From Dimorphilus gyrociliatus (lineage: Eukaryota > Animalia > Annelida): 64,000 nucleotides of DNA. The stretch spans positions 2,301,404 through 2,365,403 of the forward strand of contig CAJFCJ010000007.1 of NCBI GenBank assembly GCA_904063045.1, in the 5' to 3' direction. Under the pieces are notes generated by a model. It ran no database searches. It was not told where the DNA came from and was given only the letters and a program-made list of their open reading frames with translations. Both the position numbers and the translations under genes were made by a program. This document shows, in pieces, positions 17,507 through 26,115 of this stretch. Positions within the stretch are counted from its first letter, which is position 1, and each line of letters begins with the position of its first letter.

Positions 17507-19435
17507 TTATTGATATGCATTCGCCTTGTGCTTGGGTAAAAATACGAAATTGCTTGGCACTGGACCCAGAAGCATTTCACTTAATAAAATAAAAAGGATT
17601 TTATTGGTTGTAATTGAAAAATAATATTTGCATTTTACCTTATTTTAACCCAATCTCCGCTATTGGGACTAGCCATTAAAGTTTCTAGGTCATTTCTTCC
17701 GAAATAATAAGGTGGTCTTTCATTTATTTTTTGTGGTAAAACTTCTAATAAACCAACTGGTATATATCTATATAGAAAAGACAGCCATTCCAGCATGAAG
17801 CGTCGTGTAGTTTCTACTCCTCTAATATCGGAACCCCAATGTGCAAGTCCATAATTGGTAAAATCTTTTAGCATGTCAAACCTTTCCGAAGAGGAAATAT
17901 CCCAGTGCCGACTTTCTTTAATTTCAGTAAATATCCAAGGTTTAATCAAGGCACCTCTGAAATTTTGAAATTAGCAATTAATTTACCAATTTAAAATAAA
18001 AGACTTACCTGGCTACCATGAGACTCTTTGTGTTTGCTATTTCCTTGAAATTTAAAGCATCCTCAAAAGAGAGAATATCTCCATTTCCGAACACTGCCAT
18101 ATTCTCGGCACTTTTGACGCACTCTCCAATATAGTTCCAATCAGCGGAACGTGTATAGCGTTGTTCTCTTGATCTACCATGAATAGTTACCGCTGAAACT
18201 CCATTTTTCTCCATCATAGGTATAAGTGTGTGAGCAACATTTTTACCATCACTTATTCCCGTTCTCATTTTTATCGTAAAGTCCTTACTGATCACACTTG
18301 TAACTGTTTTTGTGATAGCTTCTAGTCGGGTAGCTCTACCAATCAGTGAACATCCTTCTCCTCTCCTATAAACTAAATCAATAGGGCATCCACAGTTCAA
18401 GTCAATAAAATCACAATTAACGTGTTCATCTATTAATTGGGCACAGCGACCTACAACATCGGGAAAAGAACCACAAATTTGAACGCCAAATAGATCTTCG
18501 CTGGCGTGACGTTTTACAAGAGCCCATTCAGAGTTCTGGCCTTGAAGTAGATTAGTACATACTGCCATTTCACCGCAAGTTATATCAACGCCATAATTTT
18601 TGCAAACTCTCCTAAAGGGTAAATTTCCCACTGTAGTTAGAGGAGCAAGATAAGTCTTATCCGAGAAATCTATTTTCTTCTTTTCGGACGCTCGAATTTT
18701 CACAGCAATATCATCATTTTCTAACTCAACTTGTGGTTTTGATACTATTGTTGCATCGCAGCCATCTTCGCTTAACTTACGCTTAGCGGGTAAAGTTATC
18801 TCTTTAGTGTTTTCTTTCCTGATTTGTGCAACAACTTTGTCAGTAAGAGAAAAATCATATTTCTTTTTTCTTAAAGTAATTTGCAATTCCTTAGAAAGTA
18901 CAGTTTTCTCACTAGGCTCAACTTTCATTTCAACTTTTTTCTGTATTTCCGTTAAATCCTCATTTGTATGCTGCTTTGCAAATCTACAAGTTAGACCATA
19001 TGGACATCTCCCAAAAGTTTCAAAGTTATAGCAAGGCCCTGGTAAATCCTCAGGCTTAGTTTTCCAGTATTCAGCAGGATCATGAAGAAATCTACACTTT
19101 TCACCAAATTGGCATTCTCGTTTCTGAATTATGTTTGGACAAAGTCGGGATTTTCCCTCCTCTAAGTGTTTTTCGATAGGACGAGTTTTATTTCTTCCTT
19201 TTAACTTTTTTTTAGGCTTTTGACCTCCCTTGTCATTTCCTTCGCTAATTTCTTCTCGCATGCTCGATGGTAAGTACTGAGAAATCTTTTTAACATGGTT
19301 CCGGTCAATGTATCTGAAATGAAACTAGATAAAATTTCATGCCAACATGTGAGTAAACTTGAAGATAAATTGACCATACTCCTCCTTAATAGGTGCAAGA
19401 CCAGATGCTGTTGAACTGCCTGTCTTTGTAGCCAT
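17507..19435 (-). CDS. DUS3L: tRNA-dihydrouridine(47) synthase
   Basis: N-terminal GLAPIKEEY, two CCCH zinc fingers, [30 protein letters not shown]; terminal exon [10 protein letters not shown]. Confidence 0.97.
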
Positions 19436-19869
19436 TGAAAATAGTTCAGAAGATTATCGTTCAAGTTATAAATGAAACATGTGATATTCTTCAAACCGCG
19501 TAATTTCGCTCTTTCTTCAGATAAACTGGTGAGGAAATATTTCGCTTTTTGAACCCCTACGAGTGAATTTAGATAAAGAAAGTGTTTTGCCTTTTAAGTA
19601 AGTTACTTGTTTAAGCTTAGTTTTACTTGAACATCTAAAATATATCAAACTAAATATAAATTCTCTAACTAATTATTGCAAAAGCTTCACTTTCAAGTGA
19701 TCTTTTACAATAAATATAGCCATTTCAATAAGTCAGTGTACAATTTCGCAATAAATCACTTTCTTTAATTATAATTAATAGTATAAAAAGAATAAATCCT
19801 ATTTTAGGAATATCCATATAAACATAAGAAAGATTTTTAAAAATCTTGCTACCTAATTGGCTATTCGGA

Positions 19870-21717
19870 ATGGAAACGTTAAAAAGGGGAAATGATTCGG
19901 ACTCGGATATTGAAGAAATTGAGAGACTATCGAAAAAAACGAAAATCGAAGGCAATTCTAGAGGGCAAACTGTAGGATTCCTGGGCGTGAAAAACGTTAT
20001 AAAAAAACAGGCAATACTATTTGCCAAAAAAATGCCGAATGAAAATGAAAAGAAAATTAAATATGAAGCTGAACATACAAGAACAAGAACCTTTAAGACG
20101 AACAATAATACTGATAAAAAAGAAAATGCTGAAGATTCTTTGCTTCTCTTATCTGAGAGGCTGAGACCAAAGAAAATATCAGATATTATTGGTCAGGATG
20201 ATATCTTGGGAGAAAATTCTTTAATACCAACACTTTTGAAGGGTATGACAATTCCTTCTATAATATTTTGGGGTCCTCCAGGCTGCGGAAAGGTTCGTTA
20301 CCGTGGGTTGTATATATTAACAATTTGATTGTCTAAACATTTATTATTTGATTAGACTACGTTGTCTCGTATATTGATTGATCATGCGAAAGGTTCAGGC
20401 AATTGTCGCACTGCTCAACTCTCAGCAGCCTCTTGTAACATTTCAGATATTAAGGGAGTAATTAAGTTAGCGAGAAATGATTGGGCATTTTCAAAGAGAA
20501 AAACTTTATTGTTTGTAGATGAAATTCATAGACTAAACAAACTACAACAAGTTCGTTTAAAAATATAATTCGTTAAATATAATAAATGAAAATAATTCGA
20601 CATCTTTCTAGGATGCTTTTTTGGCTTCTGATTTTGAGAGTGGAGTTATTATCTTAGTTGGTGCTACAACCCAAAATCCATCATTTTATCTTAATAATGC
20701 ATTATTAAGTCGCTGTAAAGTGATAACTTTAAATACATTGTCTATAGATAACATGATATCATTGCTAAAGAAGGCATGTTCAAAGTTAAACCTTCGCTTG
20801 GAAAATGAGTGTATGGAGGAAAATAATGAACAATCAAAAATTCAAATAACAGACAAAGCTCTAAAGTTAGTTGCAATTTATAGTGATGGCGATGCTCGAA
20901 CTGCTCTAAATAATCTGGAATGTTTAAGTAAATGCATAATGGAGAAACACAAAGATCTTATAGATGACCAATTCGTAAAGGATTATCTATCTGTTAAAAA
21001 AGTAACCTATGATAGAAACGGTAAAAATTTGTCTTCTAAGCTTTATTTACTATCATTGCGAATGTCTGTTCTTTTTTTTGGAAGGTGAGGAACACTACAA
21101 CTGCATATCAGCTTTCCAAAAATCAATAAGAGGATCGGATGATAACGCAACAATTTATTGGCTTACTAGAATGCTTGAAGGTGGAGAAGATCCGCTGTTC
21201 ATAGCGCGAAGAATGGTTGTAATAGCAAGTGAAGATGTTGGTTTAGCAGATGCGAATGCTCTACCACTGGCTGTAAGCGCTCTACAAGCTTGCCAAGCCA
21301 TCGGTCTTCCAGAATGTTCAGTTTGGTATTTTACAAAATACAGTATATTATATCTAATTAAAACAACTATATTTCTAGATAAATTTAGCCCACTGCGCAA
21401 CTTACTTAGCAAGAGCTAGAAAGAGTGTTGAAAGTTACATGGCTTATAAACAAGCCCAACTCCTTATAACTGAGCGTGATGACTTACTTCCAGCCGTTCC
21501 GTTGCATCTACGAAATGCGTCAACGCAACTAATGAAAGATCTTGGTAAATTAATTATATAAAATAATATTTGAATAAGACTTTTTATTATTTTCATTCAT
21601 ATGAATATAGGCTACGGTAAAGGATATACTTATTTCTCCGGTGAAGATCCCCAAGGTAGCAAGCAGACTTATTTACCTCCGGAGTTGCAAGATGTTAATT
21701 TCTTCAAGAAAAACTAG
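19870..21717 (+). CDS. WRNIP1: Werner helicase-interacting protein 1 (MgsA/RarA AAA+ ATPase)
   Basis: ERLRPK, Walker A GPPGCGK|[53 protein letters not shown]. Confidence 0.96.
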
Positions 21718-22286: not shown

Positions 22287-22744
22287 TTAACTGGACTCTT
22301 GATCATTTGTTGTAAGGCAAGTTTGAACAATTTGTAATAGTTTCTCAATATCATCCTCACTTAGTCTTTCTTCGCATTCTTCGACTAGAAGCTGAATTTC
22401 GACTTGCGTGGTTGGTCTAAGATTAAGAATTTGAAGTTTCTCTGCTTTAGTAAGGTTGAAGGGTTCTATTTTCTGTTGATTGAGATTAGAAATGTTTAAT
22501 TGAGAAATTCTACTTGCTTGTTACATTACTTTAGTACCTGCATAAAGTTTTCTATAATTTCCACTGACTGAGATACGGCTGGAGTTTGTTCCAAAAATTT
22601 GACTGTTGAATAACAAACTGTTGCTAGATTTTGTTGATTTCTACCAGGTTTTCTTTGGTCATTTGTGCCATTTTGAATGTCTCGAAGATGACTTAATACT
22701 TCATGATTACTTAATAATGCGTGAGTTTTTTCCACAACCTCCAT
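22287..22744 (-). CDS. CRCP: RNA polymerase III subunit RPC9 / CGRP receptor component
   Basis: [15 protein letters not shown]; exon 2 [33 protein letters not shown]. Confidence 0.95.
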
Positions 22745-23681
22745 CAGGATATTTTCTTCGTTTCTTTCCTTGTAGAAATGTTTTGAAAATTTTGTATTAC
22801 ATTCAATAAATCAAATTTTTTAAGTTTATAAAAATCTCATATTTTGATAATAATGTTTTAGAATCTAGTTTAACAATATTCGCTATTAGGAATAGAAGAT
22901 CGATTATAATTAAGCCTCAAATAAGTTATGATGAAGAAAAAGATTTTATAATTACTTTTTTTTAACAGACAAATGCTAAAATACTTCCGATTTGCCAGTG
23001 TATTACACTATTTCTTACAGTTGTGAAGGTCTGAATCGAGTTAACGGGAAAATAATATTCCAGCATTAGTACGGTGTCCATAATTTACTTTTTAGAATGC
23101 TTGAATTTATTAAATAAACTAACATATTGCTACTGGCAGGCATGGTAACGAAATTTACAAATATATAGTAAAAAAAGTGAAAAACTTTTCGTCTTTGTCA
23201 TATAGTAGATCAGTATTTAATTGATTGTGTATATAACATTGTATAGTTAATTTTGATTAGGAAAGAGGCAAGGGAAGTATTCACGAAAGTGGATTGCAAA
23301 GTACCTGAGAAATGTAATATACTAAAAACGTGAAAAGATACCACAATAACTTTGTGAAAAAAGTATAATAGAGTACCCAAACAAAACTTAAATTTTCTAT
23401 ATATCTAAATTTCAATCCTAGCTAATGCGATTGTTTATTCATACTTCAGTTTTTAATTACGACTTCTTATAAGCTTAGTAAGAAGTCATTGGTCATTATT
23501 TTAAAAAATTCTTACATTAAACGAAGGCTTGTTCATAAAATTTAAAAGTCGACAAAACTGATTGAATGCGCGTTTTCGTATAAAAATAAAGTCGGCGTAA
23601 AAAATTAATATCAATATCGTTCTATCGTATTTATTAGAAAAATAATGTTGCTTATATCAAAAATTTTTGGAACAAATAAAT

Positions 23682-23803
23682 GCCGACTTATTCTGTTTCC
23701 GGCCCAAGATACTTCCTTTTACCTCCACGAGGCAACCAAGAGACATCAGAATCCTAAGGCTCACCGCTTTTCGGATTGAATAAGTCGGCCAGGAAATACA
23801 ATG
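23682..23803 (+). promoter_or_regulatory. RPS20 promoter/5' leader: TTTCCGG (ETS-like) site, TOP-like pyrimidine tract, hairpin element and 12-bp inverted repeat
   Basis: CTTCCTTTT tract near 23713. GCCGACTTATTC (23682-23693) and GAATAAGTCGGC (23778-23789) are exact reverse complements. ATG|gttagt at 23801-23803. Confidence 0.75.
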
Positions 23804-24310
23804 GTTAGTATGACAATTCCTAAAAGATTAAATATTAAATTGATGTATTTATTTTTTTTAAAAATTTCGTTGCATTATCATAAACTTTAATCAAAAAAAA
23901 TTTCAGGATAAACCACAAAAGACATCAACTGAAGAGGCTCCGGTCCATCGTATCCGTATTACTTTGACCAGCAAAAATGTTAAAAGCTTGGAAAAAGGTA
24001 ATTTTATATTATAATTATTGAAAAATATACATATTTTAATTCTCTTATAGTATGCGGTGATTTGATCAAGAGCGCCAAGGATAAGAAGTTGAAAGTTAAG
24101 GGACCGGTTAGACTCCCCACTAAAGTTCTCCGTATCACCACGAGAAAAACTCCTTGCGGTGAAGGTTCTAAGACCTGGGATCGCTTCCAGATGAGAATCC
24201 ACAAGCGTCTCATTGATTTACATAGCTCCTCTGAGGTTGTTAAACAAATCACTTCAATCCCAATTGAACCCGGAGTTGAAGTTGAGGTTACCATTGCTGA
24301 TGCTTCATAA
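23801..24310 (+). CDS. RPS20: 40S ribosomal protein S20 (uS10); exons 23801-23803, 23907-23997, 24051-24310
   Basis: [19 protein letters not shown]...[43 protein letters not shown]. Confidence 0.99.
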
Positions 24311-24929
24311 GATATTAATACAATTCCTCATCTGAAGAAAAATTAATCTTGTGCTCTCTTCTATTGTATTTTTCCACCATACTATAGCGTTCACTAATTT
24401 ACGTAACTCCTAGGATGAGATATTACCCTCTACTGATTCGAAAGATTATGATTAATAGAAATATTTTAAATTGGAAGGCACTCTTATGAAATTATTGCCT
24501 GTGACAAACAGATTAAACATCATAATGTAACATCTAGACAAACCCTAAACAAAATTCCTTTTTAAGCTAGCCCAATGTTACTAACTTCGAGTTTGAAGAC
24601 GTAATGAGTTTTTTGCAAATACCACGACAAAAGAATTCAAAATATAGTAACATGAATTTGTTGTTTAAAGTTGACTAGGCACAAATAATAAAACTTTTGA
24701 AAATATGCTACTAGTAGTTTGGATTAGAGGGTTCCCTGATCCGCTCTCTCGTTGAACGATTAGTTTTCTCACTATGACTATAGAAGTACCAGCCTATTCC
24801 ATGAGATTTACTACGAAAGTTACTAGAGGTCAAGGTTGGGTGAATAAATCGGACTCACACCGAGACTTATAGCGTTATATTGAGCATAAAAAATTGTAAT
24901 TTTTTTTAGTTTTTTTATAAGATCACGTG

Positions 24930-26115
24930 ATGACGGAACCTCCTTCAAAAGTGATTAAGATGTCGTCGAGTTTGGATCAGCTGAAACAACTAACAACCGT
25001 TGTCGCCGACACGGGAGACTTTGAAGGTATTTATTTGCCAATCATGATTCCTATTAGTGAACCTTTATATGACAAAAGCAATACTTTTCAGCTATGAAAA
25101 AGTATAAGCCGACGGATGCAACGACGAATCCGTCACTTCTTTTGGCAGCTTCCAAAATGCCTCAATACGCTAAAATGATTCCAGAAGCTATAGCTTACGC
25201 TAAACAGAAAGCAAAGTAAGACTAAAACGAGCGATATATGATGATTGTCATGACAAAGCATTTTCTTTCATTACAGATCTGCGGAAGACCGTTTGGAATT
25301 GGCAATGGATAGGCTATATGTTTTATTCGGATGCGAAATTTTAAAAATTGTTCCAGGAAGGGTTTCAACCGAGGTCGATGCTCGCCTTTCCTTTGATACT
25401 GATTCTATGGTATCTAAAGCTCGTCGTTTCATCGAAATGTATGAAGAATGTGGAATTAGTAAGGAAAGAGTACTCATCAAACTAACCTCCTCTTGGGAGG
25501 GAATTCAGGCTGGGAAGATTTTAGAGCAACAATACGGAATTCATTGCAACATGACGCTATTGTTTAACTTCTATCAAGTTAGTATCTCATTAATTTGTGT
25601 AACAGCAGGGTAGTGAAAATATTGTACAAAATTTTTTAATTCAGGCTGTGGCTTGTGCGGAAGCCGGTGTTACCCTTATTTCACCATTTGTTGGAAGAAT
25701 TCTAGACTGGTATGTAGCTCATACAGATAAAAAATCCTATGAGCCAAATGAAGATCCAGGAGTTATAAGTGTAACAAAAATTTACAACTACTATAAGAAA
25801 TTTGGCTATAAAACAGTTGTAATGGGAGCTTCGTTCCGTAATACAGGAGAAATTACAGCCTTAGCCGGCTGCGATTTACTCACAATATCGCCAGCTCTTC
25901 TAGAAAAACTCGATGGTTCTTCCGAAGAAGTTAAAGAACAATTGTCTGTTCAATTAGCACGTAAATCTGATTATGATCGCGTTGAACTGACTGAAAAGAG
26001 ATTCAGGTGGGAAATGAACGAAGATTCTATGGCAAACGACAAATTGAGTGAAGGTATCAGGAAATTTGCTGCCGATAGTGTAAAACTAGAGCAGATTATT
26101 GAACAGCAAATGTAG
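24930..26115 (+). CDS. TALDO1: Transaldolase
   Basis: [68 protein letters not shown]. Confidence 0.98.

Follow-up and report, generated by a model that had tools for sequence, protein, structure and literature searches.

The RPS20 locus and its transcript

The 64-kb stretch of Dimorphilus gyrociliatus DNA analysed here (the window) carries a three-exon gene that encodes uS10/RPS20, as identified from its translated exons and from PF00338 homologues. All three exons lie on the + strand. Exon 1 (23712..23803), delimited from spliced RNA contigs and sequence, consists of the 5′ leader and the ATG (23801-23803), and the GT splice donor follows immediately at 23804. Intron 1 (23804..23906) is defined by a GT..AG joint in contigs of the RNA runs X1, X20 and X21, and exon 2 (23907..23997) by joints in the RNA contigs and by a reading frame that continues from the M. 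Exon 3 (24051..24310), supported by an RNA joint, by translation and by the PF00338 homologues, ends with the stop codon at 24308-24310. Upstream neighbours are an RPC9/CRCP-like ORF (22526-22744, -) and, further off, a WRNIP1-like AAA ATPase (19846-21419, +); the downstream neighbour, a transaldolase gene (+) from 24960 onward, starts ~650 bp past the RPS20 stop codon. An EMP70/TM9SF gene stands head-to-head with RPS20 in Mytilus and Branchiostoma (L004:1-1006, L005:1-1008, L006:1-1014); in the two cnidarians (L008, L023) that position is taken by a FAM220/ankyrin gene. Neither arrangement is seen in the window.

The labels of the RNA runs in which the locus appears (invertebrate, coral or marine metagenome) fit an annelid source. 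Spliced RPS20 contigs from three of them start at 23729-23731 (at 23729 in X1 and 23731 in X21). Run X20, in which depth reaches ~100,000 across the leader, has depth in the bin 23710-23750 and zero in 23669-23709, and no contig from any of the four runs covers 23341-23709, with the qualification that contigs drop rare variants. Because the contigs start at 23729-23731 and a pyrimidine run, CTTCCTTTT, occupies 23712-23720 just 5′ of these starts, the cap site probably lies at ~23712, at the C of CTTCCTTTT (a candidate 5′ TOP start), a placement that allows for the inability of contigs to show exact ends. RNA was seen nowhere upstream of 23710. A further X20 contig matches the leader hairpin described below as far as 23792 and then diverges, with another leader followed by exon 2 (ATTATTAAAATGGAAAAACC...); it is similar, not identical, to the sequence of a close relative (L001) and shows that the run contains another type of RPS20 transcript, derived either from a paralogue or from a related species. 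Many taxa (leaders L011, L015, L023, L008 and L005) have a YY1-like GCCAT(T/C)TT motif downstream of the pyrimidine start and ahead of the hairpin; the motif is missing from the Dimorphilus leader.

A hairpin adjacent to the RPS20 start codon

The RPS20 leader forms a hairpin of ~40 nt in total, whose consensus comprises three short stems, P1 to P3, split by small conserved internal loops. P1 pairs CUGGCU with GGCCAG and is closed by an invariant U.G pair, after which comes a 1x1 C.C mismatch. P2 pairs AC with GU and is followed by an asymmetric loop, CGC opposite A, and P3 pairs UGUUC with GAAUA, including a G.U pair in 15 of 18 sequences. The tip is free in both length (4 to 36 nt) and sequence, and the apical inserts gave no indication of extra conserved stems, their energy being no better than that of shuffles (mean z -0.18). 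RNAfold, applied to single sequences, predicted the same architecture in nearly all species, and RNAalifold, applied to the alignment, returned P1, P2 and P3. The stability of the hairpin is moderate, ranging from -10 to -30 kcal/mol across species.

A preliminary description of this DNA, prepared from its letters alone, had placed an interrupted hairpin 5′ of the ATG, and the 41-mer that it quoted is indeed found there, at 23753-23793. The conserved hairpin as delimited by covariance modelling, RNAalifold and pair counts spans 23752..23794 on the + strand and is contained in the transcribed and spliced leader. In Dimorphilus, P1 pairs CU[aa]GGCU with GGCCAG and the C.C mismatch falls at 23762/23786; P2 pairs AC with GU, with the internal loop CGC opposite A; and P3 joins UUUUC to GAAUA beneath an apical loop, GGAUU. 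The two strands of this structure contain the 5′ block, GGCTCACCGCTTTTC (23758..23772, +), and the 3′ block, GAATAAGTCGGCCAG (23778..23792, +), which pair with one another and whose alignment columns are invariant or nearly so. Relative to the consensus blocks, GGCUCACCGCUGUUC and GAAUAAGUCGGCCAG, the Dimorphilus copy differs by a single G-to-U substitution, which falls in the 5′ block, and its P1 is lengthened by 2 inserted nt; all pairs of P1, P2 and P3 form save one U.U in P3. With this U.U and the AA bulge in P1 it is the weakest copy of all, and the folding energy of its local hairpin does not stand out from that of shuffles (z -0.4 to +0.2). The stem base ends at 23793, just ahead of the ATG at 23801 and the GT donor at 23804.

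Conservation and restriction to RPS20

Both blocks are present 3-20 nt 5′ of the RPS20 AUG in every animal locus that was fetched, and in all of these loci exon 1 ends with this AUG, which abuts intron 1. The loci comprise those of the close relative, Mytilus, two Branchiostoma, Lampetra, Xenopus tropicalis, the rodent Ctenodactylus gundi, the spider Nephila, the beetle Henosepilachna, Nematostella and Acropora, together with six metagenome contigs. The block columns are invariant or nearly invariant across 18 sequences from at least 6 phyla, the rodent reading GGCTCACCGCTGTTCG...GAACAAGTCGGCCAGG and Xenopus carrying ...GAATAAGTCGGTCAGG. From cnidarians to mammals it is the lower half of the hairpin that hardly changes, namely P1, the U.G pair, the C.C mismatch, P2, the CGC/A loop and P3 with its G.U. 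The preliminary description had suggested a non-coding element conserved across bilaterians, to be abandoned if other RPS20 leaders lacked the blocks; none of the animal loci fetched lacks them, and their presence in the cnidarians Nematostella and Acropora widens the claim. Rodent, frog and lamprey, the nearest proxies for the human gene, establish both blocks in vertebrates. At the protein level, an elephant shark ORF prediction (P0090) translates a CUGACU-type 5′ arm, which is compatible with the GAC/GUC variant that the same description had suggested for human RPS20. Element copies are also translated in N-terminally extended ORF predictions from two marine eukaryote transcripts (P0013, P0023).

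We built a covariance model, R1, from 16 non-annelid sequences, leaving out both the window and the close relative. Its sole match on either strand of the 64 kb is 23752-23794, at 37.2 bits (E 6e-7); it scores 44.6 bits on the close relative and 48-64 bits on the other RPS20 loci, and chance matches score <= 23 bits. One might suppose that the blocks persist by chance or neutrally, for example through mutational coldness of a highly expressed promoter-proximal region, and the hairpin energy in Dimorphilus, which equals that of shuffles, would fit such a view. The comparison with the close relative, an annelid-like sequence, speaks strongly against it: the exon-3 protein is 96% identical and the leader and introns are unalignable, yet GGCTCACCGCTTTTC-5 nt-GAATAAGTCGGCCAG is kept, with blocks identical to those of Dimorphilus. 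Persistence of the blocks across phyla and the R1 scores effectively refute neutral conservation, to which we give next to no credence.

The hairpin marks RPS20 and, as far as found, no other gene. A degenerate two-block pattern matched 10 times in 241 million metagenome records. Seven of the ten matches have the P1 outer stem and, a short way further on, an ATG|GT; RPS20 exons follow in six of these, the seventh contig ending too early; the other three have neither P1 nor RPS20 and score <= 23 bits. A negative control on 596 Gb of prokaryotic genomes gave 5 chance matches, all without P1 and RPS20 and again <= 23 bits. We assign the element to RPS20 alone because the P1-bearing matches of the pattern are the only ones that carry RPS20 exons.

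An Rfam search, one of the checks proposed in the preliminary description, matched the element to no family. With Rfam 15 there was no match at E<=1 in positions 22500-25500 of the window, and none at E<=0.1 on the elements of rodent, frog, amphioxus, anemone and beetle; neither the iron-responsive element nor any other Rfam cis-element matched the hairpin. As a positive control, snoRNA U54 was recovered within an intron of the rodent (L021:1955-2022) and frog (L007:3886-3950) RPS20 loci, and no snoRNA was detected by Rfam in the worm gene within 22500-25500. A mir-548-like palindrome downstream of the beetle RPS20 (L010:2894-3005), matched on both strands at less than the Rfam gathering score, is probably a MITE-type repeat. 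The open-access literature searched yielded no description of an animal RPS20 leader hairpin, and the block strings occurred there in unrelated primers only.

Base pairing is maintained on the sense strand

The alignment and covariation analysis of metazoan RPS20 leaders, which the preliminary description had also proposed, supports pairing on the basis of RNAalifold and of pair counts in 18 sequences. Paired cells make up 91% of the 18-sequence alignment, compared with 24-40% when the 3′ partners are slid. Changes occur on both sides in 8 of 15 pairs, a figure to be read beside the 7 pairs changed on both sides in the control slid by +3, and the observed values were reached by none of 500 shuffles. 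Individual events are few and covariation power is low because the core hardly varies; the compensatory changes that arose independently number six, and two wobble pairs, the invariant U.G and the G.U of 15 of 18 sequences, suit the sense strand only. Three of the compensatory changes are in P1 (C-G to G-C in Nematostella and contig mg12, C-G to U-A in Nematostella, and U-A to C-G in lamprey), one is in P2 (C-G to G-C in the beetle) and two are in P3 (U-A to A-U in the beetle and C-G to U-A in Mytilus). Two further changes involve wobbles: G-C to G.U in P1 of Xenopus and two vertebrate-like contigs, and G.U to G-C in P3 of the rodent. Because the conserved U.G and G.U would become C.A mismatches on the antisense strand, the constraint acts on the sense RNA.

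Upstream copies lie in untranscribed promoter DNA

Parts of the hairpin recur upstream of exon 1 in Dimorphilus. As the preliminary description had noted, every base of the 12-mer GCCGACTTATTC (23682-23693) has its complement in GAATAAGTCGGC (23778-23789); a repeat search identifies 23682..23693 as an inverted copy of the latter (-), and the two form the only perfect inverted repeat of that length containing G+C in 23400-23900. The 8-mer AAGTCGGC occurs 4 times in the 64 kb, where 0.72 occurrences are expected, and three of the four fall within 200 bp (23589 +, 23682 - and 23782 +). The third related copy reported near 23586 is also genuine, with AAGTCGGC at 23589 (+), and it is longer than the 8-mer: a decayed direct partial copy spans 23560..23596 (+), made up of GATTGAAT (23560-23567) and CGCGTTTTCGTATAAAAATAAAGTCGGC (23569-23596). 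The first of these segments is the junction of loop and 3′ arm, repeated at 23560 (shared 8-mers), and the second, 28 nt long, can be aligned with the central part of the element (CGC-TTTTCG-AT...AAT-AAGTCGGC) if three 1-nt indels are allowed. The decayed copy has no RNA depth, and R1 matched none of the upstream copies at E<=10.

The earlier proposal built on this arrangement was an RNA switch, in which transcription from an upstream start would yield a long RNA containing GCCGACUUAUUC (23682-23693), whose pairing with the 3′ arm would unfold the hairpin, and a short transcript from the TOP start would keep it. The 12-bp complementarity is free of mismatches and exceeds chance, and a long version that includes the 12-nt partner folds with z -3.4, a value owed to the 12-bp repeat alone. 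Such a transcript finds no counterpart in the RNA: even with a leader depth of ~100,000, no contig extends over 23341-23709. With the start site near 23712, the upstream arm falls in the core promoter at ~ -30..-19, the distance of a TATA box from the inferred start, and it is missing from the close relative and from all 16 other taxa. The mutually exclusive folds therefore do not hold up as a switch, since their arms do not occur on one transcript in the four runs and the alternative pairing is unconserved, and we regard this mechanism as very unlikely. What survives of the proposal is a conserved RNA-level element, upheld by covariation; its control by choice of start site falls with the untranscribed and unconserved arm.

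The clustering of three copies within 200 bp, on both strands around the start site, also raises the possibility, mentioned in the preliminary description, that the 3′ block, (A)TAAGTCGGC, is conserved as a transcription factor site of the RPS20 promoter. Acropora has a second 3′-block copy with 1 mismatch, ~90 bp upstream of its element and behind a second GCCATTTT motif, and the core sequence is constrained far beyond what pairing requires. Even so, G.U pairs that are specific to one strand, and double changes that compensate each other, are what an RNA would show; their specificity to the sense strand disfavours a DNA site as the cause of conservation. The 5′ block is just as conserved, most taxa have a single copy, and the upstream copies align with indels, as decaying duplicates do. 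In the window, AAGTCGGC is near no other gene start, its remaining match, at 17907, being coding-like sequence. We therefore consider a DNA-level explanation of the conservation quite unlikely; given the extra promoter copies in Dimorphilus and Acropora, the 3′ block may have a side role at the DNA level.

Judged from sequence, the upstream copies look like decaying fragments of lineage-specific local duplications within untranscribed promoter DNA, and the perfect inverted copy is possibly the product of template switching. The second copy in Acropora digitifera (L023:1340-1400) reads TTAATTAAGTCGCCCAG and looks like a degenerate duplicate of exon 1; because Acropora also has a decayed copy, the exon-1 region appears to have been duplicated more than once.

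A proposed role in uS10 expression

We propose, with a probability that we put at roughly 0.55, that the RPS20 leader contains a very old, gene-specific hairpin that docks a candidate protein, perhaps uS10, and thereby controls translation or the splicing of intron 1, the upstream copies being duplicates. That a specific protein docks on the lower stem is suggested by the lower unpaired bases being invariant, the tip being free and the element occurring in one gene only. At -10 to -30 kcal/mol, and given its distance from the cap, the hairpin would not be strong enough to stop initiation by itself. The stem base is separated by 3-20 nt from the AUG, and 6-23 nt lie between it and the 5′ splice site; because of this proximity a bound protein could block scanning, U1 access, or both. 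Under this proposal, a trans-acting protein specific for both sequence and shape would dock on the lower stem, where it would hinder the scanning 43S complex from reaching the AUG, the U1 snRNP at the adjacent 5′ splice site, or both, and its binding would set the output of uS10. The most economical binder would be free uS10 itself, in a negative feedback loop like those of yeast RPL30 and RPS14 and of the ribosomal-protein leaders of bacteria. We infer protein binding, the identity of the binder and the direction of the effect from the placement and conservation of the hairpin, which we accordingly describe as a candidate protein-binding site for control of translation or first-intron splicing, possibly through uS10 feedback.

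The same structural evidence would also serve for a cis-acting RNA structure that has no dedicated binder or is bound by something other than uS10. Examples would be recognition by a general helicase or a LARP-type factor, the tuning of start-codon use, mRNA stability or TOP regulation. The moderate stability of -10 to -30 kcal/mol agrees with this explanation, as does the outcome of a search for rRNA mimicry, in which seven element variants scored within the shuffle range against one 18S 3′ part, an atypical protist fragment (L029). Against it, the unpaired and mismatched bases have stayed near-invariant over >600 million years, which points to specific recognition, and a general factor would be hard to reconcile with an element confined to one gene. 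We view a role independent of uS10 as possible but less likely.

In the ribosome, uS10 is a late-binding head protein that stabilises an h39-h41 contact (h41 bulge) (PMC10695388). Resemblances of the element to h41 and to the strand after h43 were dropped as short words of chance size. The 18S fragment used for the comparison (L029:3632-4543) is the end of an IMG/VR 'viral' contig; its 912 nt span model positions 1-1831 and include an odd A/T-rich insert, and the contig is probably a misfiled eukaryotic one. Three other candidate functions were rejected. Pairing of UCACC with the 18S 3′ end was set aside by reasoning, the complementary bases forming the h45 loop and stem with its dimethylated A. 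A decoy 5′ splice site, AUAAGU, is broken in the beetle, spider, lamprey and rodent variants, and an upstream ORF fails for want of an AUG and of apical insert lengths in multiples of three.

A possible counterpart in fungi

A sequence with some of the same features surrounds the RPS20 start of the mucoromycete fungus Bifiguratus adelaidae (L030:1469-1518), which reads UCACCGCUG...UACGUCG. Its flanking arms, CUUAG and CUAA(A)G, are complementary and stand in the same register as those of the animal hairpin, and it shares the U.G pair, the C.C mismatch and the AC/GU pairs, with the AUG inside the hairpin. Its R1 score is low, at 7.6 bits, with an E of 0.04 when 200 nt are searched and of 0.6 when the locus is. 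It is rather unlikely, in our estimation, that the animal hairpin is one form of an opisthokont-wide uS10 sensor. If the homology were true, a gene-specific ribosomal-protein feedback leader would have been kept for >1 billion years in eukaryotes, and it would correspond, with free uS10 as its ligand, to the ribosomal-protein leaders of bacteria.

Implications

Animal phyla share very few mRNA cis-elements that can be recognised from sequence, the textbook cases being the iron-responsive element, the histone stem-loop and SECIS. The RPS20 leader hairpin offers a mutable handle on the question of whether and how animals tune single ribosomal proteins beyond global TOP/mTOR control: it is short, the covariance model R1 is ready for use, and the predictions for compensatory mutants are clear. 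RPS20 is a disease gene, associated with hereditary colorectal cancer (PMC9181716), and clinical relevance is therefore conceivable for leader variants in which the stem is disrupted.

Relation to known regulatory leaders

Like the iron-responsive element, the RPS20 element is a small hairpin of the 5′ UTR in which unpaired bases are conserved, and it is kept across animal phyla. The iron-responsive element of ferritin 5′ UTRs has an apical CAGUGN loop and a C bulge, lies near the cap, and blocks initiation when its protein is bound; in the RPS20 hairpin, in contrast, the tip varies, the lower internal loops are fixed and the position is close to the AUG. In concept the element also resembles the bacterial ribosomal-protein leaders, in which a gene-specific leader structure senses an excess of ribosomal protein (PMC3895269, PMC7247131). 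Those leaders belong to another domain of life and usually mimic the rRNA site, whereas the animal hairpin shows no mimicry beyond that of shuffles in the one 18S fragment compared.

In fungi, Li and Breaker (2017) describe an rps20 motif located in the 3′ UTR, with 20 representatives from 13 yeast species (PMC5640933). It is likewise a candidate structured RNA tied to RPS20 and proposed as a ribosomal-protein regulator (PMC5640933); an RPL32-type autoregulatory case is cited there as well (PMC5640933). The animal element, unlike this motif, is in the 5′ leader, and the two are set apart here by location. We regard the animal hairpin as a new family within a known kind, the structured regulatory leaders of ribosomal-protein mRNAs.

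Among members of this kind, yeast RPL30 and RPS14B have autoregulatory structures at exon 1 or the 5′ splice site to which the encoded protein binds, and human RPS13 and RPS26 reportedly contact the intron 1 region of their own pre-mRNAs, with feedback on first-intron splicing. We know of no report of the human RPS13 and RPS26 sites as hairpins conserved across phyla. In the yeast cases the binder is known, RPL30 uses a kink-turn, and all are confined to fungi, whereas the animal hairpin spans Eumetazoa. By inspection, the hairpin lacks the kink-turn features of tandem G.A after a 3-nt bulge, its CGC being followed by U-A and G.U. In placement the likeness to yeast RPL30 is close: a structure in a ribosomal-protein transcript adjoins both the AUG and the first 5′ splice site, and therefore one bound protein can act on splicing and translation alike.
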